Assembly (NCBI RefSeq): GCF_041956535.1
Contig: NW_027192208.1
Coordinates: forward strand, 211,036 to 275,035
Source: Calcarisporiella thermophila CBS 279.70
Taxonomy: Eukaryota > Fungi > Calcarisporiellomycota
DNA: 64,000 nt
Direction of reading: 5' to 3'
The first letter of the stretch is position 1, and each line of letters opens with the position of its first letter. The position numbers and the translations under genes were made by a program. Of this stretch, positions 17,155 through 52,643 are shown in pieces. The notes under the pieces were generated by a model. That model worked only from the letters and a program-made list of their open reading frames with translations, was not told the origin of the DNA and did not search any database.

Positions 17155-18008
17155 TAGTAGGATGAGAGTAAATCAAGAAACGGTTCACAATTTAACAGGA
17201 AATAAGCATGAAACTATAAATTCGAAAAAAAAAAAAATTGCGTGTTGTGGAAAATGCGGATTAGTACTATTTAATTTTAGTGTTGAGTAGATTAAAAAAA
17301 AATAATAGAATAAAAGTAGTGAGAAGATTCGACCAAGTATAAGCGAAAACAAAAAGTGGCATGATTTTATCATTTTCAATCTAATCTGGTACATCGGGCA
17401 TCAGAAATGTTTCAGACGGTGGTGTACAAATCGAAGCAACCGCGCAGGCATCTCATGACACTGAATTCGAATTGTCAGGCAACATTTTCCGATTCTCACC
17501 CATTTTGCACTGAATCGTACGAGCCAGACTCGATTCCGGCTCCCCATTTCCCCTGCCTCTCCTCGCCAACCATAGAATAGAGCTCCTTTTTTGCGAGCAT
17601 CGCCACCTCATCTCCTCTTGCTGATAACTCCTCTCCGCCCACTCGCTTACCCTAGCCCGTGCTCGGCCACTTCATCGATAGTCCCCTGGTGCTCGTCAAA
17701 TGGAGCCGGTTCAAGGCACGGTGGGCAAGATGCGAATCGATTCGGATTCATATTAACAACCCATATTTATTTCTCTTGCTCGTCATTAAATATGACGACA
17801 CATAGCACCTGGAAAAGAAATTCAGCTGAGGATTCAGCTAATTTTACACGAGTCAATGCATCCCATTCCGGTGGAAGGGGTGGAATAACTAGGGAAAACT
17901 AGGGGAGAGTCAAAACAAAAGCTAGGAGAAGATAGAGGGTAATAAAAACAACAGGAGCCCATTCATGTGATGGTGACGGAAGTGAGCCAAAATGGATTAG
18001 GAGACGCT

Positions 18009-20965: not shown

Positions 20966-21785
20966 ATGCGAAGGGCCCACTTTTTGCTTCTTCTCCTGAT
21001 CACCCTGACCCTCTTCACGGCGACGCACGCCGCCATTTTCGACGACATCCTGGATGGGCTGGTTCCAAAAGATGGGGATGGAAACAACGGAGGTGGCAAT
21101 GGCGGGGGCGACGACGGATCCAACAACGGCGGCGGAGGCAACAGCAGCGGCGGAAAGCCTACTGCGCAACCCTCCCAAGATACCCCCCCCAACGCTTCAC
21201 AGCAACCCGATTCCAAGTCCCCCGACTCAAAACCAACCGCGACGAGCGCTGCAGAAGCCTCGTCGCCCAGCGCTGCCCCGCCAACTCCCCCACCCTCCCC
21301 CTCCTCTCCCGCGCAACCCTCGCCCCCGGCCTCTTCAGCATCCCAGGTCGCCTCGCCATCCCGGGCGACCTCGGCCCCAGAGAGCAATACCGCCAAAGCC
21401 TCCGCGTCCGCCACCAATATTCTGTCCCTCCTGACTCAGCTTCCACCCCCCTCCTTCACGCAGAGCTATGGGTTTGTCCCCGCGGGAACCCTCATGCCGG
21501 GATCACGTGCGTGCAAGGAGTATATGAACCATTGCCGAGATCAAACGTGTATGTTTTCGATGTACCGCGCCATGTGTGACGAAAACGGAGTTGGCCACTG
21601 GTAAGTCGAGCTCGTCCCCTCCAGCGGTGCGATTGTTCAAGAAGCGGAACCGAAATGGTTTTAATTTCCCTTGTGACTTTAGTGAATGTTTAGGAACAAA
21701 CGGGGGTCCCTTTACGAAATCGCTTGGGCTGTCAGTCCTCGGAGGTGTCGGGAGCCTGGCTGTAGCCGGGCTTGTTGCATTGTAA
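20966..21785 (+). CDS. Secreted Ser/Pro-rich, probably GPI-anchored cell-surface protein with small Cys-rich domain
   Basis: Signal peptide MRRAHFLLLLLITLTLFTATHA; G/N then S/P/A low-complexity stalk; intron 21601-21682 restores CKEYMNHCRDQTC...MCDENGVGHCEC; hydrophobic C-terminus LGLSVLGGVGSLAVAGLVAL. Confidence 0.8.
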
Positions 21786-22331: not shown

Positions 22332-23453
22332 TTATCCAATATAACATCTCTCTATTTGTCCGCTGACCCCCTCTCTCGCATTCTGCAGCAGTTGCTGAGA
22401 ATAAAGAGGCCCGCTAGCCGAGCTGAGCACGGAGGGGTAGGGCTCCGCAGCATCGCCCGCGCTGTTCCCAGCAGTCCAGCCGGGGCTGGGTGCGGTGGAG
22501 GAGGGTGGATTGCTAACGGAATAATATCCTCCCGCCAGATACGGCGCCGAGGACAGGTATCCATAGTAGTCCGCCAGCGAGGGCTCGAGAGCATAGGGGT
22601 GGTAATAGTAGCCGCTGGAGTAGGGGGTATTGGAGAAGGGGCCGGGGGTGCCGCCGGCGTTTGGCGTGTAGTTGCGGGGGCGGGCGGGGGCGTGGGGGGA
22701 CACGAGGTTGGGGGTTGGGGCGGACGAGGAGCGGCGGGGGCGGCGGATGGGGCCGGCGGCCGGGAAGGTGCGCGGCGAGTCCTTGGCGGTGTAGTCGATG
22801 GTCCAGTAGCCGCCCTTGCCGGGCTCGGTGGCGGACTTGTCGGCGCGGATGAAGATGCTCTTCATCGTGAGGTTGTGGCGGATCGAGTTCTTCCACGTGG
22901 GCTGCGCGTTGTGGAAGTAAGGGTAGTGGGTGAGGAAGTACTCGTAGATCTCCGAGACGGTCATGCGCTTGCTGGGGCTCGACTCGATCGCGTTGACGAT
23001 CAGCGTCGCGTAGGACATGGGGGGGCGGCCGTTGGACTTGATGGTGGTGGTGGGCTCCACGAGCACGGCGGGGGCGGCCACCTTGGGCGCGAGCGGCTGC
23101 GGGGTCTCCTTGGTGGGGGTGGAGGAGGGGGTGGTGGAGGCGGAGGGCGAGGTGAGGGAGGCGGCCGTGGACGAGCCCGGCGTGTTCAGCGAGGGATAGG
23201 CCGGGTACCCGGCGACGGCGGGATAGCTCCACGCGTGGACCTCCAGCCCGGACGCGGCGGACGCGGGGGCGCCGATGGCGGCGGAGGGGGGGGCGTCGGG
23301 CTTTTCCGGCGTGTGCGGCCCCGCGGAATGCGGATGGGCGAGCACGGAATTAGCGAGGGGCGCGAGGTTGGTCGCGGAGGGTTGCTGGTGGGCGAACGCC
23401 GAGTCTTTCCAGTCGAAGTGCAGCTTATTGATACCGTAGTCAACCGAGGCCAT
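22332..23453 (-). CDS. Forkhead-box transcription factor (no FHA domain seen)
   Basis: ATG 23453; RPPMSYATLIVNAIESSPSKRMTVSEIYEYF...WKNSIRHNLT...PGKGGYWTID. Confidence 0.92.
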   Translation of the reverse strand: MASVDYGINKLHFDWKDSAFAHQQPSATNLAPLANSVLAHPHSAGPHTPEKPDAPPSAAIGAPASAASGLEVHAWSYPAVAGYPAYPSLNTPGSSTAASLTSPSASTTPSSTPTKETPQPLAPKVAAPAVLVEPTTTIKSNGRPPMSYATLIVNAIESSPSKRMTVSEIYEYFLTHYPYFHNAQPTWKNSIRHNLTMKSIFIRADKSATEPGKGGYWTIDYTAKDSPRTFPAAGPIRRPRRSSSAPTPNLVSPHAPARPRNYTPNAGGTPGPFSNTPYSSGYYYHPYALEPSLADYYGYLSSAPYLAGGYYSVSNPPSSTAPSPGWTAGNSAGDAAEPYPSVLSSASGPLYSQQLLQNAREGVSGQIERCYIG

Positions 23454-25339: not shown

Positions 25340-27999
25340 CTAATCTACTTTGAGGGTTTTTTGCAAATGCCATCGGGCGCCAACCACCCCCAGCACAGAG
25401 GCCGCCAAGATGCCAAGGCCAATCCCAAGCTCAGCGTATTGCGCTGACGGCGGCTGGTACTGGAAGAGCCTTAGCGTCACTTGGTCCCACACGCTCTCCG
25501 TCCAGGTGGCCCTGCTCGGATCGACCACCTCATAGCTCCCGTCTCTCTTTCGGCGCAAGCCCATCCCGTACGCATCGTGGAAGCGCGTTAGAGACGCGAC
25601 ACATCGCCCCGCAATGCAAAACCTTCCTTCGGGGCACTCATCAATGCGATTGCAGGCGGGCGCTGCAGGATCCGGGAGAGCAGTGAGATTGGCAAGCACG
25701 GTATGCACAAAGGATGAAATGTAGCTGATTTGCCGTGGGTCATAGACGGAGCTGTAATGGCTAATGGGGCCGATGGGATCGGAATCCGATGATCCTAATG
25801 CAAGATGCAGTCAATGGGTCAATTCGCGCAAGGGCCTCGATTCAGTGCATCCACTCTTACGGTTGTAAAACTGCCCGAAATAGGAGCACGAAAAGTTGGT
25901 AGTCAAGCAGCCCAGCAGCTCCGTCACCAGCGTGCAATTGGCCGAAATCTGCGCAAGGCTAGACTGCGCTCCTTGTGCATGAGTCCAGACCCCCCGGGCC
26001 ACCGTGGTCGCTAGTGAGCACATCGCACTCGCCGTTTTGTCTTGGTCGAGGTAGTCGTCCAGTTCGCTGCTATAAAACCTGTGGAATATCAATGGGCAAG
26101 CCTAGGTTAGGGCGGCTCTGCTACGCCTCTTTGAGAAACAAACGGGGGCTACTACTTGTTCAGCGCCTTCTGATAGTCGGTGATGACGACCGCCGGGATG
26201 CTTCGCTTCCGTTGCAAAAACGCTTGCGCTGCCGCAGGCGGAAGCTTTCGATCCACCCCGTCGGAGCTTGCCCGGTCCATCGCGATGGCCGGTTGAGTCG
26301 GCGGCGGAGAGCCAGCGGGCGGGGAATTGGCCGCAAGGAGCGTGGCGACGAGGTTTTGGTTCCCAGGAAGGGCCTGATCATCCACGTGCAAAAAATACTT
26401 GCCGTCGCTCGCATTGGTGAGCGCCACGGCCCCAAGCTCGATCACCGAGTCGATGTTGTCGAAGTTGATCCGCTTGAAGTCGCGATCTGCAACACACGGA
26501 TCCATACACGCGGGTTTCGCGTAGGGGCACGCGCCGCTGTTCTCCGACGCACACTCGAAGGGGGTGGCGATATCATGTACAAACCGCTGCGAGCCCGAGT
26601 GGCCCCAGGCTTCCCCCGTGAACACCGTGTAGAGGATATGTTTGGAGAGAGACTGGGGAGGCTGGGGCGCCTAAATAACAAATCGAGGCGGGTAGGGGTT
26701 AGCGTCACATGGGGAGTGGAGCCATTTCGGCTTGCTCACCTTGCTTAGTGCGTCCGCCACCGCCAACAGGGTCACCACCCCCGATATACTGCTCTCAACC
26801 CCCATGGTCAGTTCATGGAAGAGGGATCGGCTATCCATGACGGCCGAGAGGACTAGGATCGGCTTGCTCTCTTCCGGCTTGAGGTCGGAGGAAGGGGTGG
26901 AATACACAGATTTCCCGCCCACAGGGCCGCACCAGCCTGAAATGGGGGAGGGGCCAACAAAAAGCAAAATGGTAGTGTCCATACAGCAGGCTGGCATCAA
27001 AGAATCATTTACCTCTTCTCAAGCAGGTCGAAGAATCGACGGCTGCCCACATAAATGAACTGAACTCGGCAGCCACAAGGGGCCACTGCTTAAACTTCTT
27101 GGATTGGTTGTCGGTGGCGAATTGTGCAATAGTGTCGTAAGACGACGCAGTCGAGTTGTCTTGTATTCTGATAGCATACACCGGGAAATTAAAGCTGTCA
27201 TAGATCAAACCAGAGCCCTAGCCGGGACACAAACATGGGGGTTTCCACAAGTATAAGAGGGGGGCTATCCAAAGCAACGGACGTATCCGAAAATAAGGCC
27301 ACTTACGATGGGATTCCAATTATAACGATTGCTGTCGTTGGCATAGAGCCCAAATTCGCAATTAGGACATAGACTATCTGGCGAGTATTCAACCGGCCTT
27401 GGGCCAGAGCCAATAGACGTATTGGCATTCACCACTGCTATTACGCCTCCCAGTCTCCCAGCCGACTCCAGATTAAGCAAGTTTTGTCTGATCCACAGTT
27501 TTAGTGGAAATGGTGCAATGGGGGGAGGGGTGTGATATGGGGATAATTTACCTGGTGAGCAAGCCATAAGGCATAATCACAGCATACTGTAGGTCACTCC
27601 CCGCTGGCGGATTGTCTATTAATGATTGAATATCGGCCTCGCTCTGAACAGGGTAAAGAATTCCAATGCGTGGTTCTCGAGCTATCCAATGACAAGAATG
27701 ACATGAAAATCAATGCGTGGAACCGAATCAACCAAGGCATCTGGTGCACTCACACTGACAACCAATGACCCCTGTGCTGTTTAGAAGGCGCACACATGGC
27801 CAATTCGACAGGTCTTTATAGATGGTATTCTGTATAGAATCATATTGCGCAAATGCTGGGATGGGGGAGGGGAAGAGGAGGGGGGATTAGGAGCTAGTGA
27901 ATAATGGCATGAAAACAAGGCAGCCAACGAAAGAATCTCACCACATGTAAAAACTGTCCCTAGGAAAGCAATCCACGGGATGGCTCGCTTTAACCGCAT
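25340..27999 (-). CDS. NCSTN: Nicastrin (gamma-secretase subunit), multi-exon
   Basis: Signal peptide at 27999; exon motifs CVRLLNSTGVIGC, YSPDSLCPNCEFGLY, WNPIGSGLIYDSFNFPVY, AVDSSTCLRR-GWCGPVGGKSVY, AVMDSRSLFH, FTGEAWGHSGSQRFVHDI, LPPAAAQAFL, TWTESVW followed by a C-terminal TM helix. Confidence 0.92.
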
Positions 28000-28664
28000 C
28001 TTCTTCTTCCGCGTCGTGGACCTAATTCCACTACTTGAGTGTATATAAATGGGAAGAGCAGTTATCGAATTACGAGGCGCAGTGAATTAACGCGGAGAAT
28101 AGCACATTAGTGGGACCTTGTGATATGGGGCTTGGGGACGTCACCTTTTTTTCTTCTTTTCTTTTTTCTTGTTCTATAGTGATGTGGAAAGAGGAGAGTC
28201 TCATCAACTTATCTAGACCAATTTGATCTTGTATATTGTTTTGAATTTCTTTCTTTGACTATAGTTTTCTTTTATTTTTTTCTGGGCTTTGGTCATAAAA
28301 CCTTAAAGGTTGAGATTTTATCCTGTTCCCACCCCCCACCCCCATCCACGGCTCTAACGCTCTGTTACTCCTTGTTCTACGCAATCTTTTGTGGAAATCG
28401 CTACCTTAACGAATCCCTTCTCACCCCCGGTAGGTGCTTTTTCCGGTTGTCATTGTTTCTACTCTGCCCCCGTGTTGGATGGCCGGCAAACTCCTAATTT
28501 CTGCGAGATTTGCCCATTGCCATTGACACTGGAGAGCGGTTTGCATTGCTATTCATCGCATTGATAATCGGTTGGTTAAATCTTTCGTGACTAAGCGCTG
28601 AATTCTATTCTCCCTCCGTACAGAGACCAGATAGAAGCTATTTTTAGCTTGTAGAGAACAAATA

Positions 28665-36537: not shown

Positions 36538-38191
36538 ATGGGCGAGGTGAAATTAGCTTCTTTAACTTAATGTAGTATTCCTTTGTTTTTGCTGACGCTA
36601 TCCTCTTTTGTGCTGTTTTCATTCCCACCCCATTCCAACCCTCCAGTGGGAAAAGCTCCTGAAACTTGCTTCAACCTATACTGATGCTACAGAGCGACTC
36701 CTCAAGACTCGACAGCGTGAACATAAAGAAGAAGAGGAGCGTAAACGGCGAGAGGAGGAGGAACGCCAGCGAATCGAACGCGAATCGCGCCAAATTTTCA
36801 TCAACCTAACCAGGAAAGAAGAGGAGCTGAAGCGAAAAGCACAGGAGGAAGAGAAACGACGGAGAGAATTGAGAGAAGAGAGAAGAAAAGAGAGGGAGAT
36901 TGAGCGATTCTTAAAAGGTCCTTCAGGAAGTAAACAAGCTAAGACTGGTCTTTCAAGGATCAGCCAGGACCCAGTAGGAGATCCACCTGCAAAAAAGGTA
37001 CTTTCGATTGTAATGATAAATTAATAATTCATGCCTATGCTATTGCGATTTACCGGCTCTGATCTGATTTTGCCCTGGTGAATGTAGAAACGACGCGAGG
37101 AGCCATCCTTTGATGAGCTGATGCGTCAAGCTTCCAGTGTAGATGCATCAGCGTTTAGCCTTGCGCCTGTCCTTGTTAGCAAAAAACTGCCGGCCTCTTC
37201 AGCACCCGCACGAAATGATAAATCTGCCACTAATTCGGGTAGATCTACGGCAGAGATCACTAAAAGTAACTACAGTTCTTCAAGACCTAAAGAGTCAGCT
37301 ATCGAACGTGCTCTGGCTAGTGGGTCAAGCGCCCTTTCTGCCATCAAGAATGCTCGCCGCTACTCCTCCCCTGGCACGAAATCCCTTAATTCGACGGATA
37401 CAGCCACTGGCCGTGGCCAGAGTCGCTCGAACATTTCCAGCACTATTACTAATAAATCGAATGCCGCCAAACCTAACGGCAACGAGCATCTTTCTGCGCG
37501 CGAACGCCTAACCAAGGAGATTAGAAATAACAACCGACCGGTTCCCCTACAGACTAAAAAGCGGGATTTGAGATCTGTAGAAGAGATACAGATGGACTTG
37601 TGGCGGCGAAGAGGTAAAAACATTTCCCCCGACACATCTTCTGCTCCTCGTGACCGTAATGGCATGGCTCGTCCCCCATCTGCCCCCAAAAGCAAAACTC
37701 CACCCACCTCAGCCTCATATAGGAGTAGATACTCTGCCTCACCCAATCCAACCAAATCGAATCTTGAAAGTGCTCGCTCTTCGATGCGACGTCCTCGTTC
37801 CTACGAGGAAGAGGAAGAGGAGGACGATGATTTAGATGACTTCATAGATGACGAAGAAGAGGAGGACTATCACGGAGACTATCGTGGTAGAAGCCAAGTG
37901 TCAAGTGTCATATCACAGATTTTCAGAAGAAGGCAACCGCAATACGATGATTACGGCGACTCGGACGATGACATGGAGGCGTCCGCAGCCGACGTTTACA
38001 TGGAAGAAAGGAGAAGGTTAGACATGCTGCCGTTTTATTTGGCATAGCTCAAGCTTGAATAACTGACGCTTTATTTTTAATAAATTAGTGCGAAGATTGC
38101 TAAATTGGAAGATGAGCGTGAAGAGGAGCTTGAGCGGCAGGAAAAGGAGCGTTTGCGCCAAAGAAAGCTGGCGCGAATGGGAAAGCGTTGA
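36538..38191 (+). CDS. SPT2: SPT2-family histone chaperone/chromatin protein
   Basis: Charged coiled-coil N-terminus, KRDLRSVEEIQ, DDLDDFIDDEE and C-terminal DDDMEASAADVYMEERR-SAKIAKLEDEREEELE (SPT2 domain) across short introns; start exon (ATG GGC GAG|gt) inferred. Confidence 0.85.
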
Positions 38192-38483: not shown

Positions 38484-39534
38484 ATGCTATATTTTGTGCG
38501 GCAGCGTTGTCTCTGGCTTTCCGGTTGCAATTTGCGAAGAGCAGCAGTTCAACCTAGAACAGGTTAGCCGAAGCGATCCTGTTGCTTACTGACTTTCTTT
38601 TGGTACTAAGTTGCATGGTTGCCTATAGGCTTTTTCAATCGCGCCTTTGCATCCCAGTCCACCCCACAAGCCCCTCCTCCACTTTCTTCAATCGTCAAAA
38701 ACCTCAAGACAACACTTGCTCAACGCGATGTGTTGTTCTATGAGGCGCCGCAGTCGTCTCACAGGATAATTACGATTCTGTATTTGAGCGCTGGAGTGCA
38801 ACTAGTGTTTTGGTAGGGTTTGATATGGTATTGGCTGGTGATGTAATGATTCTACTAACTCTATGGTCATCAGGGGAAATATCTCCAATTTGATGTATTT
38901 AACATATGGAGAGAAGAAGAGGTAATATGCACTCGCCGGTTCGTTTTTTGACTCTTCTAATTAACCACAATAAAATCTCTAGTGATGAAGGCAATGAAGC
39001 GAGTCTTGCTCCTAAATCGAAACGCTTGGCCATATCACTTGGTCTCTTTACAATTGGATTGCTTGTATCTGGGGTAATGTGTGCTTATCCTTGGCGGTAG
39101 GTTTAAACTTTCCCATTATTCTAAAGTGCCAACTGACTGATCTCTGAACAAATATACTGTAGATATGTGAGCAAATTGACGCTACTCAAAGGGGGGAAAA
39201 ACATCCGTGTGCAGACTGCCTCATGGTATCCCCGCTTCTCTCGGGATTACCACATCGACGATCTGATGTGTAAACAGAAGCTATTTACTGGTAGAGGTAA
39301 CACTTAATTCAAATGCCATTTTTCCGCTTCTTCAGCTCTCACTGCTGGAATCTTTGACTGAGAGTTTAAATTATCGTAGGTGAACGCGGGACCGAAACGT
39401 TGTCTTCTTCTTCCCATATATTTATTAATGCGAAAAACGAGAAACTTGCTTATGTGCTTGACCGCCGAGGTACCTTCAGCGAGCCGCGGATCTTCGACGC
39501 GCTACTGCACAAACCTGGCAAATGGAAAAAATAA
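38484..39534 (+). CDS. TMEM223/Mrx15-like mitochondrial inner-membrane protein, multi-exon
   Basis: Arg-rich presequence-like N-terminus; two TM segments (ILYLSAGVQLVFW; LAISLGLFTIGLLVSGVM); LAPKSKRL, RYVSKLTLLKGG, YVLDRRGTFSEPRIFDALL. Confidence 0.75.
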
Positions 39535-40047
39535 CCCATGCTATACTTGTTTTGAGTTTAAATAGAATGCGTATTTCTTCTTTTCTACATATATGTTCAT
39601 GTCGGTTGAATCCCGAGGAAGAAAATGCTTTCCCTTTGATTTATTTCAATATGAGGGCGGCTCATTTGACTGCATCTAATTTACGAGAAAGTGATTAAAT
39701 TGGAGATACAGCCAATTTTTCTTGCGCAAATTTTGGTTTAGAAGAAGGCGTATGCCTCGAGTGGATACGTTTTTTTTCACACCTTATCGCAGTATACCTT
39801 CTTGGCTCATTCAAACTAATCTAGTCCATATTCTATACCCGAGCCCTCTCCGGACTTAGACTACCTTGGATCAGTTTTATTATATGACATTTACGTCTTA
39901 GGTTTAAGTGCCCTCCATTATACAGCTACTACGCCTGATTTTTCTTGATAGTACCCAATTGATATGCTAAACTTAAGTTTATTATATTTCCATACATTTC
40001 TGGTTCTAGAGACTTGTCTTTCGAGAATGAAATTCATGGAAGCCCCT

Positions 40048-40284
40048 TCAGCTTTTACGAACACAGCACAACTTTAGACACTTTTTGTAAGGAAGACCGG
40101 ATTGTCTACAGTCAAGCATGCAAATCGGAGGATAATAGCAGGTATATGCAGGAGAAGCGCTCTCAGTATCTGCTCCAGTCTGGACGGACGCGTCTTCCAA
40201 CGCTCTTTCCACAGTGGGGGCACCCTGTGAAAGCATGGCGAAGCAAAGAAGAGTAAAAGTAGTGGCGGTGGTAGTAATCTTCAT
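40048..40284 (-). CDS. Secreted prepropeptide, 6-Cys cationic mature peptide
   Basis: Signal MKITTTATTFTLLCFAMLSQG, acidic pro-region, C-terminal C-x5-C-x3-C-x9-C-x3-CC; TATA (tatatata) ~60 nt upstream. Confidence 0.8.
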   Translation of the reverse strand: MKITTTATTFTLLCFAMLSQGAPTVERALEDASVQTGADTESASPAYTCYYPPICMLDCRQSGLPYKKCLKLCCVRKS

Positions 40285-41753
40285 CTTGGTAGTTGATAGA
40301 ATGTAGTGTTATTTAGTTAACAGCTGAGAGAGTAACCAGGTATATATAGGCCAGAGACTTCTGCACGACATGAATTTATGAGCTGTTAGGAAATAAATCG
40401 GATAAAATCTTGGCTCCAACAAGGTAGAATGAATCATACGGACGTGAGAAAGAGCATGATACCAACAAGGGATAACCCATTGATCACTGTTGGCAAATGT
40501 CTCGGCCTCTTGAACTAAGCGATAGTAAACTTCAGTCAAAAAAGTTTGCTTTTTTATGTTGAAACCTAATTTCTAGTGAATAGCAAACTCTATCCGGTTA
40601 AACGAGTAAAATCCCTAACGAGTAGAGAATGTATAAGAGAAATGTACATTTTCCAAGATGATTTTAGTTAGCAATAGTGTCAAGATGTATTCTCTGACAA
40701 TATAGGGTAATTCATCTGTAATAATCTATATGTTTTCTTATGAGTGTTACCAAGCCTGGTATCTGTAAATTGGAAAAAATAAGGTTTATTAGCTGGCCTA
40801 GTGTTTGGTAACTTAAGTTTGCTCAAAAGGCCAGAAGATTACTCACTAATAACGTATGATTCACTTGCATATACAGCATCAACCCTTCGCGGGTAAAATT
40901 TCGGTGAATTCCTCCTTCAATTAGTTATTTGTGAATTTACTTAATAGCAACATCATGTACAAAAAGCGTTTTTTCTAAGAAATATGAATTAAACTAACAT
41001 CTCAAGTCTAAATATGAATTTAATTAATCTAAAACAAATGTATAAACTAATACCCTATCCAATTTTCATCAACCACACTATAATAATAATCTCTATTATT
41101 TTCATAGCATAGGGCACCTCTTGAAGTATATTTACTTGAGGCATGAAGGAAGATACCTCCCATCGCTGAAATTTTCCCCACAAGGGAAAAAGATATTAGA
41201 AATGAAAAAAAAGGGGGAAAAAAGCTTTCAAACCCAATTTTTCCTTATTCTAGTTAAAATTTCCTATAGTGGCATAAGGAAAACTACAAGCAAGATATTT
41301 CAACCACGATATCAGTAATTTTTTTCTATTGGATTCATATCTGTTGTGAATCTTGCTATTGCTACCTAATTTTTAAACAAAATTCATAATTCACTTAATT
41401 TTCATTATACACGTGTATAAAACAGTTCGGCCTGATTGAGCCTCTTAACCTAAGAACTGAGGATATCCTCAGACTGCTATGGTCTTCTAATTTGTGCTCG
41501 ACAGTGAAAGCAGTTAATTGAGAATGCAGCAAGACAAAACAATAAAAAGATGGTGGGTAAGATATTAAGCCTCTGTCCTCAGACAAAACATTTAAGAAAA
41601 AATTTAATAAGCAACAGCAAATAATAGGTATGATTAATAAGTAAACTTTTGGATAAATTGCTTGTCCCGAAAATGATCACAAGATAAAGTGAGTCATGAA
41701 AGCGTGAGAAAGTTGAAAAGACCCCAATTAAACAAAGTGTAGAGTTGTGTGAA

Positions 41754-42014
41754 ATGAGTTGGATGCCTGCTATTCCTTTCATCCTTATACGTCTTCTAGC
41801 CCTCCATAGTTACAGATATTTTTAGTGCGGTCCGTAGGCCGAAGAGAAGACTTAGGGGAATTTGAAATAGCGAATCCGGTATGCAGCTGGGTACAGTGCT
41901 GTATATTCCATGGGAAATGTGATCGTAGAATGCAAACCAGAAAACCTGCCGGCCTTCCGAGATATGTATTGCATAAATGAGAGATCATGCAGGTCGAGAT
42001 GCCTTCTTACATAA
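41754..42014 (+). pseudogene. Probable decayed paralogue of the 8-Cys peptide at 42822-43085
   Basis: Signal-like MSWMPAIPFILIRLLALHS; two frameshifts recover VCSWVQC...VECKPENLPAFRDMYC...RC with similar Cys spacing; 261 nt vs 264 nt. Confidence 0.5.
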
Positions 42015-42821
42015 TACAAAGTATCGATTGAGCATATAAAGTATACTGGACTATCTCTAAAAAACGAATTGATCGCACTAGGTTGAAGCCAATTTTTAAT
42101 TGAGAACAAAAATATGATTGTCTGATAATAGTGATCCTATTCTTTATTCCAATTCCGTTGAATAAAATAAAAATAAAATAAAATTGAATACTAAGCGAAA
42201 CTCGATATCGTTTGATAGGATAGATGAGAGAATTATGTAAGGACTGGCCAGTTAGGATCTCGTAGTGAAAGGATGAGAATTCTTACCTGAACCTAATGGA
42301 GTAGAGACCGATGTGCTAACAGGTCCAGCCACTCTATAGGCTCTGCTATCGTGTGAAATAATTGCTGACGCGGCTGTCGAATGCAATTTCATGTATATGA
42401 ATTTTGAGTCGAGTGTATATAATGTATTGAAGACGACTGAAGATGATTTCATTGTAATAAATCGTATCGTTACTCTGCTCAGCTATATTTTAATATCATC
42501 CAATATTTTGCATTATATTACTGAAAGCGGTAAATGATGAGGTCATTGAGCTTAGTATTTATTTTAATCATGCATAGCAAAGTACTTCGGATTCGAGGGT
42601 CGGAAAGGAAATACTGGCCGTTTTTAGCGCGCTTGTTTACTTCTCAAGTTTTATATTACTATATCTTCATCTTTCAAAACTTAAGATATTATGCTTCGAC
42701 GGAGAACTGCTCATAGGTAATCAGAACGCATTAAAATAAAATAACATTTCTAGGATAGAATCTTCCTAATATAACTATTACTAATTACACTTTACAATAG
42801 ATTGATCTATTACAATTAAAT

Positions 42822-43085
42822 TTAAGGATAACAATGAGCATCCACCCCACGTCTGTTACAGCACTTCATGAACTTGTCAATATTATCATTAATGCAATCC
42901 CAGTATTTATCATTCCTCTCGTACCACCCGCAAATATTTTCACCACAAATATAGGTTGGCCACTTTCCAGGCAACTTTTTGCTATTGCTACAGAAGCATC
43001 TTAAACGCTCAGCCCCTGCCATTCCGCAGAGTGCAATGGCTACTGACAGGAGGAATATGAACTTAAAAATATTGTACTTGAACAT
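42822..43085 (-). CDS. Small secreted 8-Cys protein (87 aa)
   Basis: ATG 43085; signal MFKYNIFKFIFLLSVAIALCGMAGA; CxC-x14-C-x4-C-x11-C-x10-CC-x8-C; 5'-UTR intron 43093-43164; TATA at 43237-43247. Confidence 0.85.
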   Translation of the reverse strand: MFKYNIFKFIFLLSVAIALCGMAGAERLRCFCSNSKKLPGKWPTYICGENICGWYERNDKYWDCINDNIDKFMKCCNRRGVDAHCYP

Positions 43086-43089
43086 TTTA

Positions 43090-44140
43090 GCCCTAGAACA
43101 ATAATACGAGTGGAGTATTAGTTGTAATAGAGAAAGGCACACTATTTTCAGTTTGTATACATACCAGAATAAGGTGAATAATAAGAGGAGGAGAATTAGG
43201 CGTATTAACGAGTGGCTTCCTTTAAGGAAAATGAGGCCTTTATATAGTCTTTCAGAGGATACAAGTGCCTAGAATCTTAGCGTATTATTAGCCGAATTTC
43301 ATCTCCATTTTGCCATTAGTTAAGCCAAAAAAGGGTACTCAATCTCGATCATTAACGACTCTATAACGCAAGCCCCCGGTGATTTTTCGTAGGCTTCAGC
43401 TTCTCCGGCTCCCGAATCTCAGCTCCTCTATTCTTACTGTTAGACATGGACAAAATCTCGACTAAATAACTCCGCTCAAATACAATTCCTCTCGCCACTA
43501 GCCACCTTTGCTTATGGCGTGTACGAATACACCCCGATATATTAAATCAGGTTCCATGCATTACAAGCATTTCTATACTCGCTCCATACAAAGGGTAACG
43601 GGAGATTGATCGTGACAATGTGTAAAAGAGAAAAGATTGCGCCTCCCGCCTGATTGGTCAAACATAAAATTCTAACTCAACTACCAAAGACATACTCGGC
43701 ACTGTTGATTATCTATATATTTAGTTAGAGTGTTCGTTTAATTTATTGTACCGGATTTTGACTGACTTTCTCAGTTGCTGTATTGCGATCCAGTAAAGTA
43801 AAAGATCAAACGAAGTTTAGCAATGACGTGGCTTCTGCGGAGCTAATATTTGTAATAAAAAAACAAAGAGGCTTAATAATAACGCAGCTGCATATAGATC
43901 CTCCTATATTGGCATGGGAAGCTATGTCATATCTTTGCATTTTGTCAGTACTAGCTCGGAATAAATTTGAAGCAATTTTATTTCCTGTGTTGAGAACTAA
44001 TGGGGGACTGACGTGCTGAGTTGAGTTGGGTCGAAATTTGTCTTCTACGCTAATGTTCGGATCAAAAAAGAGAACTGGTTTGTAAAGAGATTAGATACTG
44101 AAACGAAGGAGCTAAGTTTTTCCATTCCAAATCCATGATA
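43090..44140 (-). promoter_or_regulatory. Promoter/5'-UTR cassette copy 1 (homologous to 45090-46040)
   Basis: Collinear blocks shared with copy 2: cctttatatag, ccaaaaaagggt, tcaatctcgatc, taggcttcagct, cgccactagccacc, cgctccatac. Confidence 0.8.
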
Positions 44141-44705
44141 TTATCGAATATTCCCACGTACCCCCAAAAAATCAACAAAGTAACCGACAATTGACATTTG
44201 TGCCCAGTTCATTCGAAAAAATTTACAACCGTTATATCGATATATGCCTCTACTATTCAAAGATATCACTTTTAAAGTTTCAGCTTTCTATTAGCATACT
44301 ATAAATTATAAATGTAGTCAAGTAGAAGTCAATTTATGAAAATCAGTTTAAACAGAGTTTTTTTAAATATGGTAAAGCTCTAATACTGAGGCTCTCAATA
44401 CAAATCACATCAGGCTGAATAATCTATTATAATGTATATAAGAGAGTGTATATTGGACAATGAAACGGCAAAAATTATTGAAAGATAACCGCTATTTCAG
44501 TGTTAAACCCTTGAAAGTAGGGCGAAATAAGCATCACTCTTGTATACTACACTACGTTTTCCAGCAAATAAGTTCAGATTCACACGTTAGAGATGCTTGC
44601 AAAATCAAGGCTCATTATAAGAATAAACAGATACAATTTGGAATGCATTTTGGTATTATGTAGCTCTTTTATTAATATTATAAATTATATCATTATAGGT
44701 ACTAA

Positions 44706-45089
44706 TTACTTCTTACAGGTGTTAACATCAAGTTCAGTAATACAGCCTTGAATTTTAAAGCTCTTCAAGGTCCTGCCCTTTTTGCTTGTCTCGGGTTTTG
44801 ACCAGCTTCCGTCAGAATGTCCCAAATCATTGTTCCTGCAGAGAGGGTCCGAATGCAAGGTAATAACACAGCGGCTAAAGGGGGTCAAAGTGCAAAACTG
44901 GAACGACCTCACGCCTTTATCCGTAATGCTCTTAGCCAATGCATAGCAGTCGTTCTTGGCAGAGGTTGATTTCCACTCCTGGTACTTTCCAGTGTAATCA
45001 GTTCCTGTATAAACACCCATAAACCATGCGTCTGCAACATTAGACAAAAGTGCCAAGGCACAAAGGAAGATACAAAATGCGAATTTCAT
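44706..45089 (-). CDS. Small secreted protein, beta/gamma-crystallin-like Greek-key pattern (127 aa)
   Basis: ATG 45089; signal MKFAFCIFLCALALLSNVADA; VYTGTDYTG...CYAL...VRSF and ITLHSDPLC...LKSFKI; 6 Cys in mature part; 5'-UTR intron with GTATGT donor at 45175. Confidence 0.85.
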   Translation of the reverse strand: MKFAFCIFLCALALLSNVADAWFMGVYTGTDYTGKYQEWKSTSAKNDCYALAKSITDKGVRSFQFCTLTPFSRCVITLHSDPLCRNNDLGHSDGSWSKPETSKKGRTLKSFKIQGCITELDVNTCKK

Positions 45090-46040
45090 TGTTCTATAGT
45101 GAATTTGAGCCAACTATTGAGATGTACAATTAGATAAGACAGGGGATGGAGCTTTCCATCTTATTTTCTACATACCTAGGTGGTTTGTGTAGATAGTTGA
45201 GGGGAATGATTAGGAGTTCTATTAATTTATGGCGTCCACAAACGAGATCAAGCCCTTTATATAGCCTTTTCAAGGATCCCAGGATTCTTAGCATACCATT
45301 AGCCGTATTTCATTTCTATTTTGCCGTTTAGTTAAACCAAAAAAGGGTGATCAATCTCGATCCTTTCGCAACTCCGCGACACGAGCCCCAGGTGAGTAAT
45401 CCTCGAGCATAGGCTTCAGCTCCTTTGTCTTCCGAAATCTCAGCATTTACTTCTTGAACGCTAAAAATATTTCTCCGCCTTAATTTAAATTCATTCGCCA
45501 CTAGCCACCATTCGACATATTGAGAGTACAATACTTTCCTGTATATTGAACTATCTTCGACCTATTAAAGGCGCAACCATGTCCGCTCCATACGAGAATG
45601 ATTGAGAGATTTAGTGTGACACAATAAAATACCCTCAACAAATTACGCCTCGCGTCTGATTCGCCAACAATGCAATTCCGACTTGACTTCCAAAGATTTG
45701 CTAGCAAAATCTCTGGCGTTTTGAAAATAGTTCATGAAATTTATTGATTGCAATGGGTTTGGACAGACTTTCTAAGCAATTTTTGTGGCACAGTTGAGTA
45801 AACAGTAAAATGAAGCCAGACAATGGAATGGAACCTATGGAGTTAATATCTGTGAGTAAACTACAGACTATATCGCCCTTAACCAAATAAGCCCTAATCG
45901 TATGCAAAATATTGTAAGAGCCAAGAGTCATGGCAAACGTCGAGTTCTACGTTGAAGCTCTAATCAAGGCGTTCAAAAATTTAGATGCAACATAATCATG
46001 ATTAGAAGAACCAAGGTTCTCCATTCAAAATCTGTAATAT
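45090..46040 (-). promoter_or_regulatory. Promoter/5'-UTR cassette copy 2 (homologous to 43090-44140)
   Basis: Same collinear blocks at 45254, 45337, 45351, 45410, 45496; TATA at 45254-45264. Confidence 0.8.
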
Positions 46041-46499
46041 GCAATACGATTGGCACCTATGCATATTCCAAACAAAACAGATGAAATGTGCAGTGGTAAA
46101 TCAATACAGAGTGCTACCAATCTAAATTTTCATTTACGGACCCCCGAACATCAAAAGCTGTATTTCTGTACATTAACATGATATCGGTGATACCAATACA
46201 CCAATGCATATTGTTTTAGTTGTTGTCCCAAAAAGATAAATTTAAAATATTAGCCTCTAAGTATGTGGCCTTCATAGCACATTTCAGGTTCCGCAATTCG
46301 TCCATATTTCTATTGATTACGTCAACGTAACGTAAACTAGCAGATAGATATAAAAGTATTAGTGAGTGGGAAACATTGAAAAAGAAGTTGTATTTTGGAA
46401 TCAAAGTTGAGTGAATTTTACGGCATACATATTCTAGGCTACGTTCCTACATTTATACGTCGCTTAATCTGCCCACCAGTGATATTCCGGCGTTTTTTT

Positions 46500-47345
46500 A
46501 ATATGGTATGAAACGAGAAATAAAAGTGTTTTGATACATTTTGGGATTATTTGGCTCTTTTATGATAAAAATTCATATCATTGCAGAAAATAATCGCTCT
46601 CCTCACGTTTTAACATCAATATCAGTAATGCAAGGCTTGAACTTTTAAAGCACCTCTTGATCCTATATTTTTGTGAATCTCACATTTCCATCATCTTCTA
46701 AGGTCACCTGTGACCGTTCCTGTAGAAAGAATCCAATAACCTTAATGATAATTTCTACTTCTTCTGTGTTCACTTCCAATCACCCAGCAAATGAGACAGC
46801 ATTTCTCGAGCGATCAGTCGGGATCTTCGATCCTCGAACCGTTGTCAAATTTTCCAATCACATTACCAGTATGCACCATTGAATCCTCCTCTGTCTTATT
46901 ACGAATCTCCAAGTTACTATAGACCACCTCTCCCCAAAAAACATCCCATGTAGATTTAGCAAAATGAAATTCAAAGACGAAGATAAAGATAGATATACTC
47001 CTTTCCCAGCAAGGCCTCGCCAGATCCAGCCCTACCAGAAATTCCTTCTTGTCATTAAAATCAATGAGTCATTATCCTAGAAAAATTCATGTAGCATGCC
47101 TTCATTTGCTATTGAATAAAAAGGTAAATATTCCAATCTGCAACATCATGCGGAGCATTCTACTTCCTCTATCCGACTTAAATATTGGCGACACTAGCTC
47201 TAAACTCAAGAAGCGGATTTGATGCAAATTTTTACACTCCATCTACGTGAGGCAATTAGTTATACTTCCAAATCAATACGTTCTTTAACCATTTCCTGTT
47301 GTAGTTTACTCCTCCTTATTTTTAATTCTCTCAGTTTGACATCGG
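46500..47345 (-). pseudogene. Degraded coding-like sequence of unknown family
   Basis: One minus frame reads as protein-like text interrupted by several stops (…LEVNTEEVEIIIKVIGFFLQERSQVTLEDDGNVRFTKI*DQEVL*KF…); no family recognised. Confidence 0.25.
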
Positions 47346-48391
47346 ATAAAATTACGTTTTACACAATCTTTTTGGCATATTTTGAGCTTTTTTTTAATTA
47401 TATTGATAAAGATTAGATAAAAAGTTCTGAGAAGATACATAGGCCAGATATAATAGAGGAAAGAGATTTGGCGAAAAATGTTAGACATAAAATTTAGTTG
47501 AGAGAGCATAGCTTAGTTATATAATATACAAATTAAAGCGTGGCTTACCCACTCATGACTTTTCCATCTAGCAATATTTATATCGTATTCCTTCCACTAA
47601 TTTAAACGTGATTACTCCAGGGACTGCAATTGCATTCCTCAATCTGTTTACTAATGAATTTAGCTGCGCCACTAAACATTTAGATGGTGTGACATTCTAG
47701 AGAATTGTTTGGAAATACCAAGTGAGCATTTGCCGAACATTTAACGAATTAAAAGCTTCCCATTAATATACTAGTTTCTAAAAGTATGTGGTATGTACCA
47801 AATATTAAAGCAATAAAGATGTCGGTTACATCGATTGTCAGAATAAGACTGCCAACGAATGAGTTATTATTTCGATTACAATACATGGTATGACTCTGCT
47901 TAACAAAGTTATTATTAGTGTGGATTTCGGTCGCCACATTATTAATTAAGCTATCTGTACTATCTATTTAATGCAACCATAAACCACAGGCTGAACATAG
48001 CCGAAAAAAAATCTTTGATTTAAGTCTAATTGGATTACATTTCGTTACTAAGCTCAGTGTTTGTGGCTGCTTAGTAAAAGATCACAGTCCTTGCTTCACA
48101 ATGAAGAGGTCGCTCCTTAAATATACGTATGCTGATCCCGGAGATCAAATACAAATTCAACAAAGAAGAAAGAAAACGCGTTTGTAACTAACCACATCAC
48201 CTTGCGGAATAGACCGTCGAAGTCCGCAGTCCATTATATTCTCATTGGCATCAAGCTAAAAGCACTATATAAGCTACGAGATTTTCAATTTACTACTAAA
48301 GATTTTACTCAGTGTCTTTGCTATTTCCAAGCCAATCTCTAAATAGAAGATTACTTTTATATATAGAACCTTTTATTAATTTATACTCAAT

Positions 48392-48706
48392 ATGAAGCTC
48401 TCTGTTTTTGTCGCTCTTATTGCCTCGACTCTCACCATTTCCAGTGCCTGTACTGTTGATATCATCAGAAACGGCAGAGTTGCCTACACCCATGGCAGTG
48501 ATAAATGCCAGTCTGTTGATTCAACCGTTTCCCATGCAGTGTTTCGCAATTGCCCAAAGTGCGCAGCGATTGGATTCCATTGCGCAAATGGAGAGGTATG
48601 GGGTTATGGCCTCGAAAAAGCGGAAAAAGAACTTACTATTGCCCCAGTTCCCAAATCTTGCAAGGTTGTGAAGACTTGTTTCAAGTTGAACGACTGCAGA
48701 AAGTAA
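48392..48706 (+). CDS. Small secreted 8-Cys protein (104 aa), copy 1
   Basis: Signal MKLSVFVALIASTLTISSA; 8 Cys all conserved in copy 2; TATA ctatataag ~48265. Confidence 0.88.
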   Translation: MKLSVFVALIASTLTISSACTVDIIRNGRVAYTHGSDKCQSVDSTVSHAVFRNCPKCAAIGFHCANGEVWGYGLEKAEKELTIAPVPKSCKVVKTCFKLNDCRK

Positions 48707-50278
48707 TTGTAAAGATATGGAGTGTTTTATTTGATTAAGATATATTTTGAAAATATAAATAAATATAATTCAAATCCTCTAACTGGAATTGCATTCGAAA
48801 AAACTAAGTTGCATATTGAACATTTTAATAGAAAGTGAAAAAGATCAAACTATAAATAGTGTTTATAGTGTTTTAAGGGAATAAAATAAAATCGACTGAA
48901 AATAGAGTATATGCAAAGTAAAGTTTTATTTGCATGAGATTGCTTCGGAATAGCGCATCTATATATATAATGAAATGTATTCGTTTTTCTTTGACAGAAA
49001 CTCTTGTTGAACAGCATTATGTACTATATTCAGAGTAGGCTTCTTCGTCAATATTACCCAGTAGGTCCAAATGATCTGGCATATAAGGTCGTGAATTTTT
49101 TAAAGAATAAATAATTCGAATCAAAATTCCGCTGCTTTCGTGCATATATAATTTCCATATACAGAATGCTACAGAAAAAGAAAGTGCTCGGTATTATCTA
49201 ATTTAAGTTAATATTAGTATTATTCTTAACTATTTTTACATACATTTTGACATAAACTAAGACTTTTTCTCTTATCTTAATTACCTAGGCAGAGATTGGT
49301 GGGGTTATACTAAGAAGATATGTAAAAAATTTGATGGAAAAAGATAAACTATGATACTAATATAGCGAATAATGATAGATTCATTGTTCAAATGGGAACT
49401 CATAATTATGTTAAATATTTTACAGGCATGACTTCCCCACTCTTAATACCACTACACCTTAATCTTTCCACCTTGGCAAAAATAGATCGCGCCCCTACCA
49501 TTCATTGAGGTTTAATCAACCTACTGCTATTGCATCATTCAATTCCGTTTAAAGAAATATCAGCTGCGCCACTATTCGTATAAATGGCCTGATATTTAAG
49601 AATACTTTTGGGAAATATCAAGAGAAACCTACGTATTAAACTAATTAATTAAAATTTTCCCAATAGTATACTAGCTCCTACTTAAAACATGTGGTACATA
49701 CTAATATGGAATAAATAAAGTAAAGGTATCGGTGTCAGCGATTGTCAGAATAAGAAGATGTATGGTTGTCGTGGTTACAATTCACAGTATGATTATGCCT
49801 AGCGTAACAATTATTAGCGTGAATTTCAGTCGCTGCGCTGCAAATTAGGCTATCTATTTAATGCACTCATAAACCACCGGCCGATATAGCCGAAAAAAAA
49901 TGCTTGATTCAAGTCTGATTGGATTACTTTTTGGTTCTTAGCTTAGTTTTTGTGATAGCTTAGTAGAAGTGTGTGGTTCTTGCCTCACGATGAAGAGGTC
50001 GCTCCTTAAAATATATGTGCTGACCCCTAAGTTTAAACGTAAATATAACAAAAACAGAAAGAAATCACGTTTGTGATCAACCACATCACCTTGCGGAATA
50101 GACAGCCATAGTCAGCAGTCCAGTTTATTCCCATAGGCACATAGCTAAAATCACTATAAATGTTATGAAATTTTTGACTTGCTACCAAAGTTTTTACTCA
50201 GTGTCTTTGCTATTTCCTAGTCAATCTCTAGTTAGAGATTATCTTTGTATATAGAATCTTAGTTGATTATTACTCAAT

Positions 50279-50594
50279 ATGAAGCTCTCTTGTTTTTGTC
50301 GCTCTTATTGCCTCGACTCTCACCATTTCCAGTGCCTGTACTGTTGATATCATCAGAAACGGCAGAGTTGCCTACACCCATGGCAGTGATAAATGCCAGT
50401 CTGTTGATTCAACCGTTTCCCATGCAGTGTTTCGCAATTGCCCGAAGTGCGCAGCAATTGCATTCAAGTGCGCAGATGGAGGGCAATATGGATATCGTCT
50501 CGAAAAAGCGGAAAAGGAACTTGGTCTTGCCCCAGTTCCTAAATCTTGTAAAGTTGTGAAGACTTGTTTCATTTTGAACGAATGTAAAAAGTAA
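50279..50594 (+). pseudogene. Small secreted 8-Cys protein copy 2 with +1 frameshift (pseudogene or sequencing indel)
   Basis: atgaagctctctTgttttt vs atgaagctctctgttttt in copy 1; removing one T gives an intact 104-aa ORF ending TAA 50592-50594. Confidence 0.8.
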
Positions 50595-51868
50595 AATTAC
50601 ATCAAAATTTTGGAATGTATGTCATCTGGTTAAATAGTTTGAAAATAAAATCATTTACAAAAATTTATTCTTATTCATCAAGGATAAAAAGGTTTGAAAA
50701 TGCTGACTTAGGTGAAAATTCGTATTAAAGGTGAGAGTTTGTATCCACACGCAGTTTACAGAGGAGTATCTATATGATATATTTGTATATGCAAAACCTC
50801 AAATATATTTTATGATGCTCACTGCAAAGAGCTGTCACTAATATAATATCTGTATATTTAGATTTAAGCATTTCCGAAATAAATTAACATTTCAGTTGAA
50901 GAGTTAGTAACGAGTATACTGTATACGAATAATAGTAGTTTATGTTTTTCAAATATTTAATTGTTTTATATGGGGGTTGTTCGTAAATGTAGAGGTAAAT
51001 GTAATAATAAAAGGCATCCCGAAACTTTTCTGAGATATTTTATGATTATTTTATGTTTTATCGAATGAAATAAACCATGACATATAAAGACACGCTATCA
51101 TATATGGCCAAATTGCAAATAATCCAAACTAAATTTAAAGAACCTAAAATGTTGGGTGAATTGATCAATCCATCTCTTGGCTGTATAGAATTTATTAAAC
51201 TAATGTTAATTATATATAATTTTCTCAAAAAAAAAAAGACTAAATAAAGCCCTGCGTAGAGAATCGTGCACGACAAATTGCCTCATAGGTATTAAGGATT
51301 CCGCAAGAGATATGTTAATGTTAATCATGACTATTATCACAACCATTCATGCTAGTAAGTTAATCTTATGTCAATATGAACATACCATTTGTAGTGTTTT
51401 GACATACATTTCTCTATATCTGGTGTTGGAGATGTAGAGTTTATCAGGAAGAATTAAGTCTGTTCTTATTTTTACACATTTTAATCGTATGCAGATATAT
51501 ATATGAGCAGTATGAATTGGCCTGTATCCACCTGCCTTAGTCCTCGAAAATTCATGCAACCACCTCCGAAATACATGCAATCAATTTGCAGCTCAATTTT
51601 AGTTTCTAAAAGTATGGCGCAGAAACGATTTCATTTCGACTGCAGCACAAAGGCGGCTTAGCATCGAATCTGATTCCCTTTTTAACACCTATTTCTGAGC
51701 GGAAGGACCTCTCTTCTTATCCTTTATTCTTCTTTTCATCCAACCATCCATCCATCTTTCTTGTATTGAAAACCTATTCAATCCAAGCAGAAAAGAATCA
51801 TAAGCAAAATCAGCGCATCTCTTATTCTATCTGTATCAGAGGTTTAGAAGCAAGTAGCATTATCTTTT

Positions 51869-52643
51869 ATGTCCGAAATTCAAAACTTGAAGACTTTTGG
51901 TAAGTGATTTTGATGGGATAATCGGTAACAATAATAGTCAATCTCACCTTTTCACTCTTGCCTATAGACCCCTTTGCTGATACTGGGGAAGACAACTCTG
52001 CCGGATCTTTTGATCAACAACAATATATTCGTATCCTCTTACTATAATGTTTATTTTTTGATAATCTCCCCAAATTGTTTTAATGTTTTTTATATGATGA
52101 TACCATTTGTTTTACTGTTGAGTGGGGAATAGAGATTAATCTCTTTCCTTTGGCTTTTGTCGTCTTCGTTTTGAAGTGCGGCATGCTGCTTCCACGGTGC
52201 TGTTTTATATAGTCATAGTTACACTGATTATATACATTAAAATTCTTTGGGGAGATTATTTTCTATTTTTTTTTGCTTTTCCTCATTTTTATTATCCATA
52301 ACCACCATCTCCCTTTCTCTGCGCATTATAGATATCCGCATTCAGCAACGTAACGGTCGCAAGGCCTTGACGACCTTGCAAGGTCTTCCCTCCGAATTCG
52401 ATAGGAAGAAACTCCTCAAGGCCTTCAAGAAGGAGTTCGCTTGCAATGGCACCATTGTAGCGGATGAAGAGCTTGGCGAGGTGAATGTCGTTTTTCCTGC
52501 CACGATTATTTCCTTCCATTCCTCACACGTTTTTCTTTATATAGGTCATCCAACTGCAAGGCGACCAGCGCACAAAGATTGTACAGTTTTTGGTTGAACA
52601 AGCCAATATCCCTAAGAAGCAGTTCAAAGTCCATGGGTTCTAA
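51869..52643 (+). CDS. SUI1: Translation initiation factor eIF1
   Basis: Introns 51900-51967, 52031-52331, 52481-52544; MSEIQNLKTFDPFAD...YIHIRIQQRNGRKALTTLQG...KKEFACNGTIV...GEVIQLQGDQR...KVHGF. Confidence 0.97.

Follow-up and report, generated by a model that had tools for sequence, protein, structure and literature searches.

Four unrelated families of small cysteine-rich proteins with predicted signal peptides in an AT-rich island of the Calcarisporiella thermophila genome

Four small protein genes in an AT-rich island

An AT-rich, gene-sparse island of the Calcarisporiella thermophila genome was analyzed, together with the small cysteine-rich protein genes F1 to F4 that it contains. The island lies in a stretch of 64,000 nucleotides (G000:C18:211036-275035), here called the window, to which all coordinates refer unless a contig is named. 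The genome is eukaryotic and 28.2 Mb in size, and the island sits deep inside a 688-kb contig with ordinary genes on either side. An earlier interpretation of the same DNA (here, the sequence-only reading) had placed it in an early-diverging fungus, and C. thermophila does belong to the Mucoromycota. One paralogous ORF of this genome is identical in every letter to a predicted C. thermophila protein, so that the DNA is from this species or from a strain almost identical to it. It had also described an AT-rich, gene-sparse island with four intact, intronless open reading frames (ORFs) for secreted Cys-rich proteins of four Cys frameworks, a description that the following results bear out.

Positions 39540-51900, no strand: AT-rich gene-sparse island, with the left-hand gene (stop codon 39532-39534) on one side and the SUI1 gene on the other.
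Positions 40048-40284, minus strand: F1, intact ATG-initiated ORF for a 78-residue pre-pro-peptide with signal peptide, acidic propeptide and a mature part of ~30 residues (predicted).
Positions 42822-43085, minus strand: F2, intact ATG-initiated ORF for an 87-residue, presumably secreted protein with 8 Cys and a predicted KP6 killer-toxin fold.
Positions 44706-45089, minus strand: F3, intact ATG-initiated ORF for a 127-residue, presumably secreted protein with 6 Cys and a predicted single beta-gamma-crystallin domain.
Positions 48392-48706, plus strand: F4, intact ATG-initiated ORF for a 104-residue, presumably secreted orphan protein with 7 Cys, inside the duplication unit 47418-48758.

The G+C content (GC) is 0.29-0.40 per 1-kb window across ~39.5-52 kb, the minimum of the whole window. 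With the small genes masked, the island has 34.2% GC, against 41.5-47% in the remaining parts of the window that lack long ORFs; the long ORFs of the window have 50-61%. The coding sequences of F1-F4, at 41-48% GC, stand out from the island background of 34%. Between 38450 and 52247, F3 is the sole ORF of at least 110 codons. Neither Rfam families nor transfer RNA genes were found in the island. Its (CpA+TpG)/(ApC+GpT) ratio is 1.26, so that the island lacks the signature of repeat-induced point mutation (RIP).

ATG-initiated ORFs of at least 70 codons number five in the island, and four of the five are of the F1-F4 type, that is, with a signal-peptide-like start and many Cys. In all four the N-terminus is hydrophobic, small residues occupy -3/-1 and the mature part holds 6-8 Cys, from which the products would be secreted. 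In 500 dinucleotide-preserving shuffles of the island the mean number of such ORFs was 0.01 and the maximum 1. Each single ORF aligns end to end with its paralogs and therefore no coding intron is needed; Cys residues and motifs are invariant across the paralogs. By tblastn and by hhalign profile comparison, F1-F4 are mutually unrelated in sequence, and none of them matched a Pfam family. The island is a real cluster of genes for small, presumably secreted and probably disulfide-rich proteins belonging to four unrelated families. The predicted proteins F3 and F4 are present in NCBI/UniRef, while F1, F2 and several paralogs are absent, which shows that gene calling in this genome misses short genes of this kind. 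Exact look-ups with F3 and F4 in public contigs found nothing.

Relatives and predicted folds of the four families

The family of F2 has at least nine members here, all intact single-exon genes, to which two proteins from other eukaryotic assemblies can be added. The N-terminus of F2 is signal-peptide-like, and 5 of the 8 Cys in its mature part are invariant in the family. An AlphaFold model made from six sequences (predicted local distance difference test, pLDDT, 78.7) was compared with the PDB. With Foldseek, the top three matches were KP6 beta and alpha (probability 1.0), with Zt-KP6-1 at rank 12. In a Foldseek-independent scan of 48,161 PDB representatives, KP6 alpha, KP6 beta and Zt-KP6-1 took ranks 1-3, the next chain being at 5.9. 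The model is an alpha/beta sandwich in which a four-stranded antiparallel sheet would lie on two helices, the arrangement of the KP6 fold. In contrast, KP6 or Zt-KP6 sequence homology was not detected in Pfam or by a PDB profile search, and identity to the structures concerned (Ustilago maydis virus KP6 alpha/beta, PDB 1kp6 and 4gvb; Zymoseptoria tritici Zt-KP6-1, 6qpk) is only 13-20%. A Pfam match to a DB module (expectation value, E, 0.04) fell below the cut-off, and a PDB profile match to the designed repeat protein SAKe6BE had no passing stretch and was discarded as spurious.

Unlike the KP6 toxin, which is made as a viral alpha-gamma-beta polyprotein, F2 is a single-domain protein. A large survey reports the KP6 fold as widespread among ascomycetes and basidiomycetes and from these groups only (PMC12382754), whereas F2 is from the Mucoromycota; if the assignment holds, this killer-protein fold extends to an early-diverging lineage. 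Elsewhere in the genome, three intact F2-family genes lie within 7 kb on contig C41 (G000:C41:15957-16211, 17562-17813 and 22435-22692), and a further pair lies on contig C16 at 26527-26793 (plus strand) and 28048-28290 (minus strand). Most of these genes are absent from the public annotation.

The F3 family comprises at least five intact single-exon genes in this genome and has homologs in Aspergillus, Ilyonectria and Pleosporales (E 1e-18 to 1e-23), the Ascomycota relatives being 31-57% identical. The copy in the window is closest (41%) to one Ilyonectria and one Aspergillus tanneri protein, and the ascomycete loci are not syntenic with the island. A paralog on contig C21 (G000:C21:503442-503837; L004 1453-1860) shares 50-57% identity with proteins of Aspergillus and Pleosporales but only 22-38% with its own paralogs. 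Since this paralog is nearer to the ascomycete proteins than to its own paralogs, its sequence suggests that the F3 subtypes are ancient or that genes have moved between fungal phyla.

The predicted model of F3 shows two Greek-key motifs in an eight-stranded beta sandwich, as in beta-gamma-crystallins, and its structural matches include Protein S, spherulin 3a and microbial Ca-binding crystallins. In the alignment, motif 1 reads W22-x4-Y27-x-G29, against the signature (Y/F/W)-x4-(Y/F)-x-G, and Ser110 is invariant. Motif 2 is degenerate, H-x4-C-x-N in the window copy and F-x4-C-x-G in the homologs, and a canonical Ca-binding motif is not evident by eye. The likeness to the beta-gamma-crystallin superfamily (yeast killer toxin WmKT, Myxococcus Protein S, Physarum spherulin 3a) is thus one of fold without a sequence match: Pfam Crystall was not matched, nor any Pfam family at E<=1, nor any PDB sequence at E<=5. 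WmKT is not among the structural matches listed, and therefore a likeness of F3 to that killer toxin in particular is not established. Beside another member of the F3 family, 2.6 kb upstream of it in a stretch of 33-47% GC, a gene (G000:C39:1051-1512; L030) encodes a 153-residue, secreted-looking protein that is rich in Ser, Asn and Arg and has 4 Cys.

F1 would release a ~30-residue peptide with six Cys in the pattern C-x5-C-x3-C-x10-C-x3-CC. It has one paralog in the genome (G000:C16:391-606), 42% identical, in which all six Cys are kept and a KR site precedes the mature part. For this pair the nonsynonymous difference (pN) is 0.38 against a saturated synonymous difference (pS) of 0.72, and the ratio omega is about 0.2, in which selection is visible. 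An exhaustive HMMER search among 1.84 billion representatives found no true relative. Three long repetitive proteins that it returned match the propeptide only and are not homologs, and an Atlas feature match of 0.85 was below the useful range and was dropped. As read from the sequence, the mature part of F1 contains CX3C-X10-CX3C plus an outer Cys pair, both copies have the CX3C-Xn-CX3C motif known from alpha-hairpinin peptides, and the pre-pro-mature layout is that of fungal defensin-like peptides. In contrast, the C-terminal CX3CC does not fit the cysteine-stabilized alpha/beta (CS-alpha/beta) toxins and defensins, in which CX3C is combined with a downstream CXC. PDB matches to scorpion K-channel toxins (alpha-KTx) were non-significant (E about 1-3).

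The sole relative of F4 in this genome is a tandem copy in the same island, described below. A word search among 5.8 billion proteins found only F4 itself, and neither Pfam nor the PDB gave a sequence match. A Pfam match to VP_N-CPKC (E 0.06) was attributed to a chance CPKC, and in hhalign comparisons with the F2 and F3 profiles the signal peptide alone was aligned. The ESM Atlas holds a model of F4 itself with a predicted template modelling score (pTM) of 0.70. Its structural neighbors there are weak (TM 0.5-0.58) and include a peptidase-inhibitor-I36-like cluster, which at these TM values may be taken only as a lead.

Local duplications, a promoter cassette and decay

A sensitive self-comparison detected three duplications in the island, all with an offset of 1.9-2.0 kb. 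The spacing of stop codons is 1884 bp between F2 and F3, 1890 bp between F3 and a decayed remnant, and 1888 bp between the two F4 copies. The features concerned are the following.

Positions 43086-43865, minus strand: promoter/5' untranslated region (5'UTR) cassette, copy A, upstream of F2, with a TATA-like TATATAAAGG at 43246 and a putative 72-nt 5'UTR intron at 43164-43093.
Positions 45090-45865, minus strand: promoter/5'UTR cassette, copy B, upstream of F3, with a TATA-like box at 45263 and a putative 5'UTR intron from 45175.
Positions 46534-46760, minus strand: decayed F3-like gene remnant (3' third of the coding sequence and 3'UTR), from the self-comparison of the island.
Positions 50279-50594, plus strand: F4b, frameshifted tandem copy of F4, inside the duplication unit 49311-50650.
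Positions 50841-51047, plus strand: 3'-end fragment (~205 bp) of a Tc1/mariner DNA transposon, with at least 11 dispersed copies in the genome that match it at 70-75% identity.

The cassette copies (43185-43865 and 45199-45865) are 63% identical over 703 columns by blastn (E 1.6e-58), and nhmmer scored them at 618 and 623 bits. Profile search and alignment carry the homology on to the start codons of F2 and F3, ~780 bp in all. Blocks of 15 and 26 nucleotides are common to both copies and occur only in these two. GTATGT, CTAAT and TAG, which can be read as splice signals, are conserved in both, and would mark a short 5'UTR intron. Outside this pair, a DNA search of the own genome matched the query only, and nhmmer found no cassette in front of F1 or F4 or at the loci of the paralogs. 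The cassette thus precedes two genes with unrelated coding sequences, a clean natural case of promoter duplication. Because the same cassette stands before both, F2 and F3 should be co-regulated.

The two F4 units, 47418-48758 and 49311-50650, are 74% identical over 1371 columns. Nucleotides 1-160 of the F4b coding sequence equal those of F4 except for one extra T after codon 4, the frame being otherwise open, while the flanks of this tract are 70-85% identical. A near-identical tract amid such flanks indicates recent gene conversion, followed by the frameshift. In the 3' half of the coding sequences, synonymous divergence (dS) is 0.35, nonsynonymous divergence (dN) 0.16 and omega 0.45, and every Cys is kept, again a sign of selection. 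As a consequence of the frameshift F4b is without a signal peptide, and no in-frame ATG with a signal peptide is left; the extra T may be an assembly error.

The F3-like remnant was recognized by the alignment of 44643-44850 with 46534-46734 (68% identity, 212 columns, E 6.6e-20, offset 1890 bp), in which one Cys codon is lost and an indel breaks the frame. No promoter cassette was found upstream of it by nhmmer. In comparison with the own genome the DNA of the island is unique except for 50841-51047. The aligned copies of this Tc1/mariner end run leftwards into a transposase reading frame, and one of them (L025 802-1845; G000:C7:774701-775745) has an apparently intact ORF for a 347-residue transposase with DDE_3 and HTH_Tnp_Tc3_2. 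At L025 and at least ten other places the aligned copies look close to one another, and by this likeness the family may have been recently active. A tblastx search of the gaps 40300-41500, 45870-46530, 46700-47450, 49000-49320 and 50650-51900 found no further relics.

Turnover of genes by duplication and decay in the island is supported by these results. The birth-and-death process proposed in the sequence-only reading is borne out by three local duplications, a conversion tract, one frameshifted copy and one decayed remnant. That reading had reported no recognizable intact transposon, and none is present; it had not mentioned the Tc1/mariner end, the F3-like remnant or the duplicated F2/F3 cassette. 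It had further named two broken copies, of which the one at 50279 is the tandem F4 duplicate with its 1-nt frameshift, but the one at 41754 has no significant similarity to the families. The latter holds three in-frame stops; tblastn with 11 family proteins gave only E>1, a family hidden Markov model run on six-frame pieces gave E 2.6, which is noise, and tblastx against the other loci compared gave nothing significant. The site is a local GC peak only. The peak (41700-41999, GC 0.455) is of coding-like height and is without an intact ORF of interest or similarity to the families tested.

Possible role of the locus and its surroundings

Unequal crossing-over may make the locus grow and decay, each step spanning about 1.9-2.0 kb. 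One such step would have copied the whole F4 unit, the 5' coding half being later homogenized by gene conversion before the second copy was frameshifted. Another would have duplicated an F3 unit, of which the remnant is what decay has left, and a third would have put the ~780-bp cassette before the two unrelated coding sequences of F2 and F3. The most likely job of the products would be interference competition, with the growth of other fungi or microbes being inhibited in the hot and crowded substrates on which this saprotroph lives. A toxin or antimicrobial role is suggested by the predicted folds of F2 and F3. Known killer toxins of fungi and antifungal effectors make use of both folds. Zt-KP6-1 inhibits fungal growth (PMC12382754), and orphan candidate effectors have the beta-gamma-crystallin/WmKT and KP6 folds among their commonest (PMC10462633). 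The genomic and structural part of this reading, taken by itself, is very likely correct. The whole reading, in which a small and partly co-regulated set of secreted proteins of antimicrobial type serves in competition, seems to us somewhat probable.

Several points weigh against it. Expression, secretion and the 5'UTR intron are all predictions from sequence, a look-up of sequencing runs for 40000-49999 listed none of RNA, and F1 and F2 are absent from the public annotation. The KP6 match of F2 has a middling Z (<8), and at such values a match may be due to an arrangement that is common among proteins. Nor can function be read from a fold: beta-gamma-crystallin domains also serve as spore-coat and stress proteins. 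F1 and F4 are without any functional lead, so that the toxin/effector character claimed for the locus in the sequence-only reading holds for F2 and F3 by predicted fold but not for F1 and F4. F3 is, to judge from its sequence relatives, an old family common to Ascomycota, and a purely fast-turnover picture fits it poorly. Likewise, the idea of a fast-turnover locus stands as to duplication and decay, but the F2 and F3 families are not young or lineage-specific, the one having a fold widespread in Dikarya and the other Ascomycota relatives.

The proteins might be secreted without being weapons, as structural or developmental parts of the wall, the spores or the stress response of the fungus itself, or as signalling peptides. 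Protein S, spherulin 3a and the microbial Ca-binding crystallins among the structural matches of F3 speak for this, and F3 subtypes that are 41-57% identical between Mucoromycota and Ascomycota would suit a conserved cellular role. To our knowledge, moreover, C. thermophila is not known as a pathogen. However, the only clear PDB neighbors of F2 are a killer toxin, KP6, and an antifungal protein, Zt-KP6-1, and the families are multi-copy, patchy and non-syntenic and lie in AT-rich decaying loci, as is typical of conflict genes and not of housekeeping structure; a non-weapon role for the set is therefore rather unlikely in our view. It is improbable that the products are host-directed effectors, meant to manipulate hosts or partners among plants, animals or fungi and not to kill competitors. 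The locus gives no hint of a host target, and we know of no host association of this thermophilic saprotroph, although the genome compartment resembles effector islands and the KP6 fold includes the plant-pathogen avirulence/effector proteins AvrLm6, AvrLm10A, SIX5, BAS4 and ECP28 (PMC12382754). Finally, some or all of the ORFs could be silent relics or chance ORFs in junk DNA, given that they are known from their sequence alone, that two of them are unannotated, and that the island holds two decayed copies and a transposon fragment. This is very improbable: shuffled sequences almost never yield even one such ORF, whereas the island has four that are intact, with Cys frameworks conserved across diverged paralogs and omega <1, and two of them give confident models of known folds.

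The reading as a competition arsenal can be taken further, to a modular, co-regulated set of killer proteins in which one promoter/5'UTR-intron cassette was copied before a KP6-like and a crystallin-like fold, beside the orphans F1 and F4. We regard this extension as possible, if doubtful. If it were true, F1 and F4 would be undescribed antimicrobial scaffolds, KP6-type killer proteins would be pushed back beyond the Dikarya, and heat-stable antifungal proteins would be on offer; antifungals that come from a thermophile may have unusual stability. The locus is fairly ordinary in kind, being of a known class of fungal loci, and its value is that of a well-defined candidate set. Clusters of small secreted Cys-rich proteins are well studied in plant-pathogenic Dikarya and hardly in Mucoromycota.

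The paralogs of F1, F2 and F3 lie mostly in other stretches of 27-40% GC, so that the island is one of several such compartments. Several paralogs are within 30 kb of contig starts (C18, C16, C39). The contig starts holding paralogs showed no telomere repeats, and therefore a subtelomeric location is not claimed. What is unusual about the island among these compartments is its place far inside a contig, with ordinary genes on both sides. It resembles 'two-speed' effector compartments in being AT-rich and gene-sparse and in holding several unrelated genes for small, presumably secreted Cys-rich proteins, along with tandem duplicates, pseudogenes and what remains of a transposon: GC and gene density are below those of the surroundings, and secreted-protein genes are duplicated and decaying. 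Transposon enrichment and RIP, which also characterize such compartments, were not found, the ~205-bp Tc1/mariner fragment being all that the island has. It differs further in its mid-contig position and in belonging to a saprotrophic early-diverging fungus. The ordinary genes next to it include the following.

Positions 37121-38047, plus strand: an ordinary gene, the second one leftwards from the island, whose ORF has an SPT2 chromatin protein domain (Pfam E 6.9e-12).
Positions 52247-52597, plus strand: exon of the SUI1 gene, translation initiation factor (Pfam PF01253, E 1.4e-15), the right flank.

The sequence-only reading had correctly named SUI1 as the right flank. The left flank, as read from the sequence, is a multi-exon gene ending at 39534, for which the name 'TMEM223-like' could not be verified: its exons, scanned one by one against Pfam, gave nothing at E<=10. 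Outside the island, an ORF at 20966-21604 (plus strand) encodes 212 residues and looks like a gene for a secreted or wall protein: the start is clearly signal-peptide-like, a long low-complexity region rich in Gly, Ser and Pro follows, and the short C-terminal end contains Cys.

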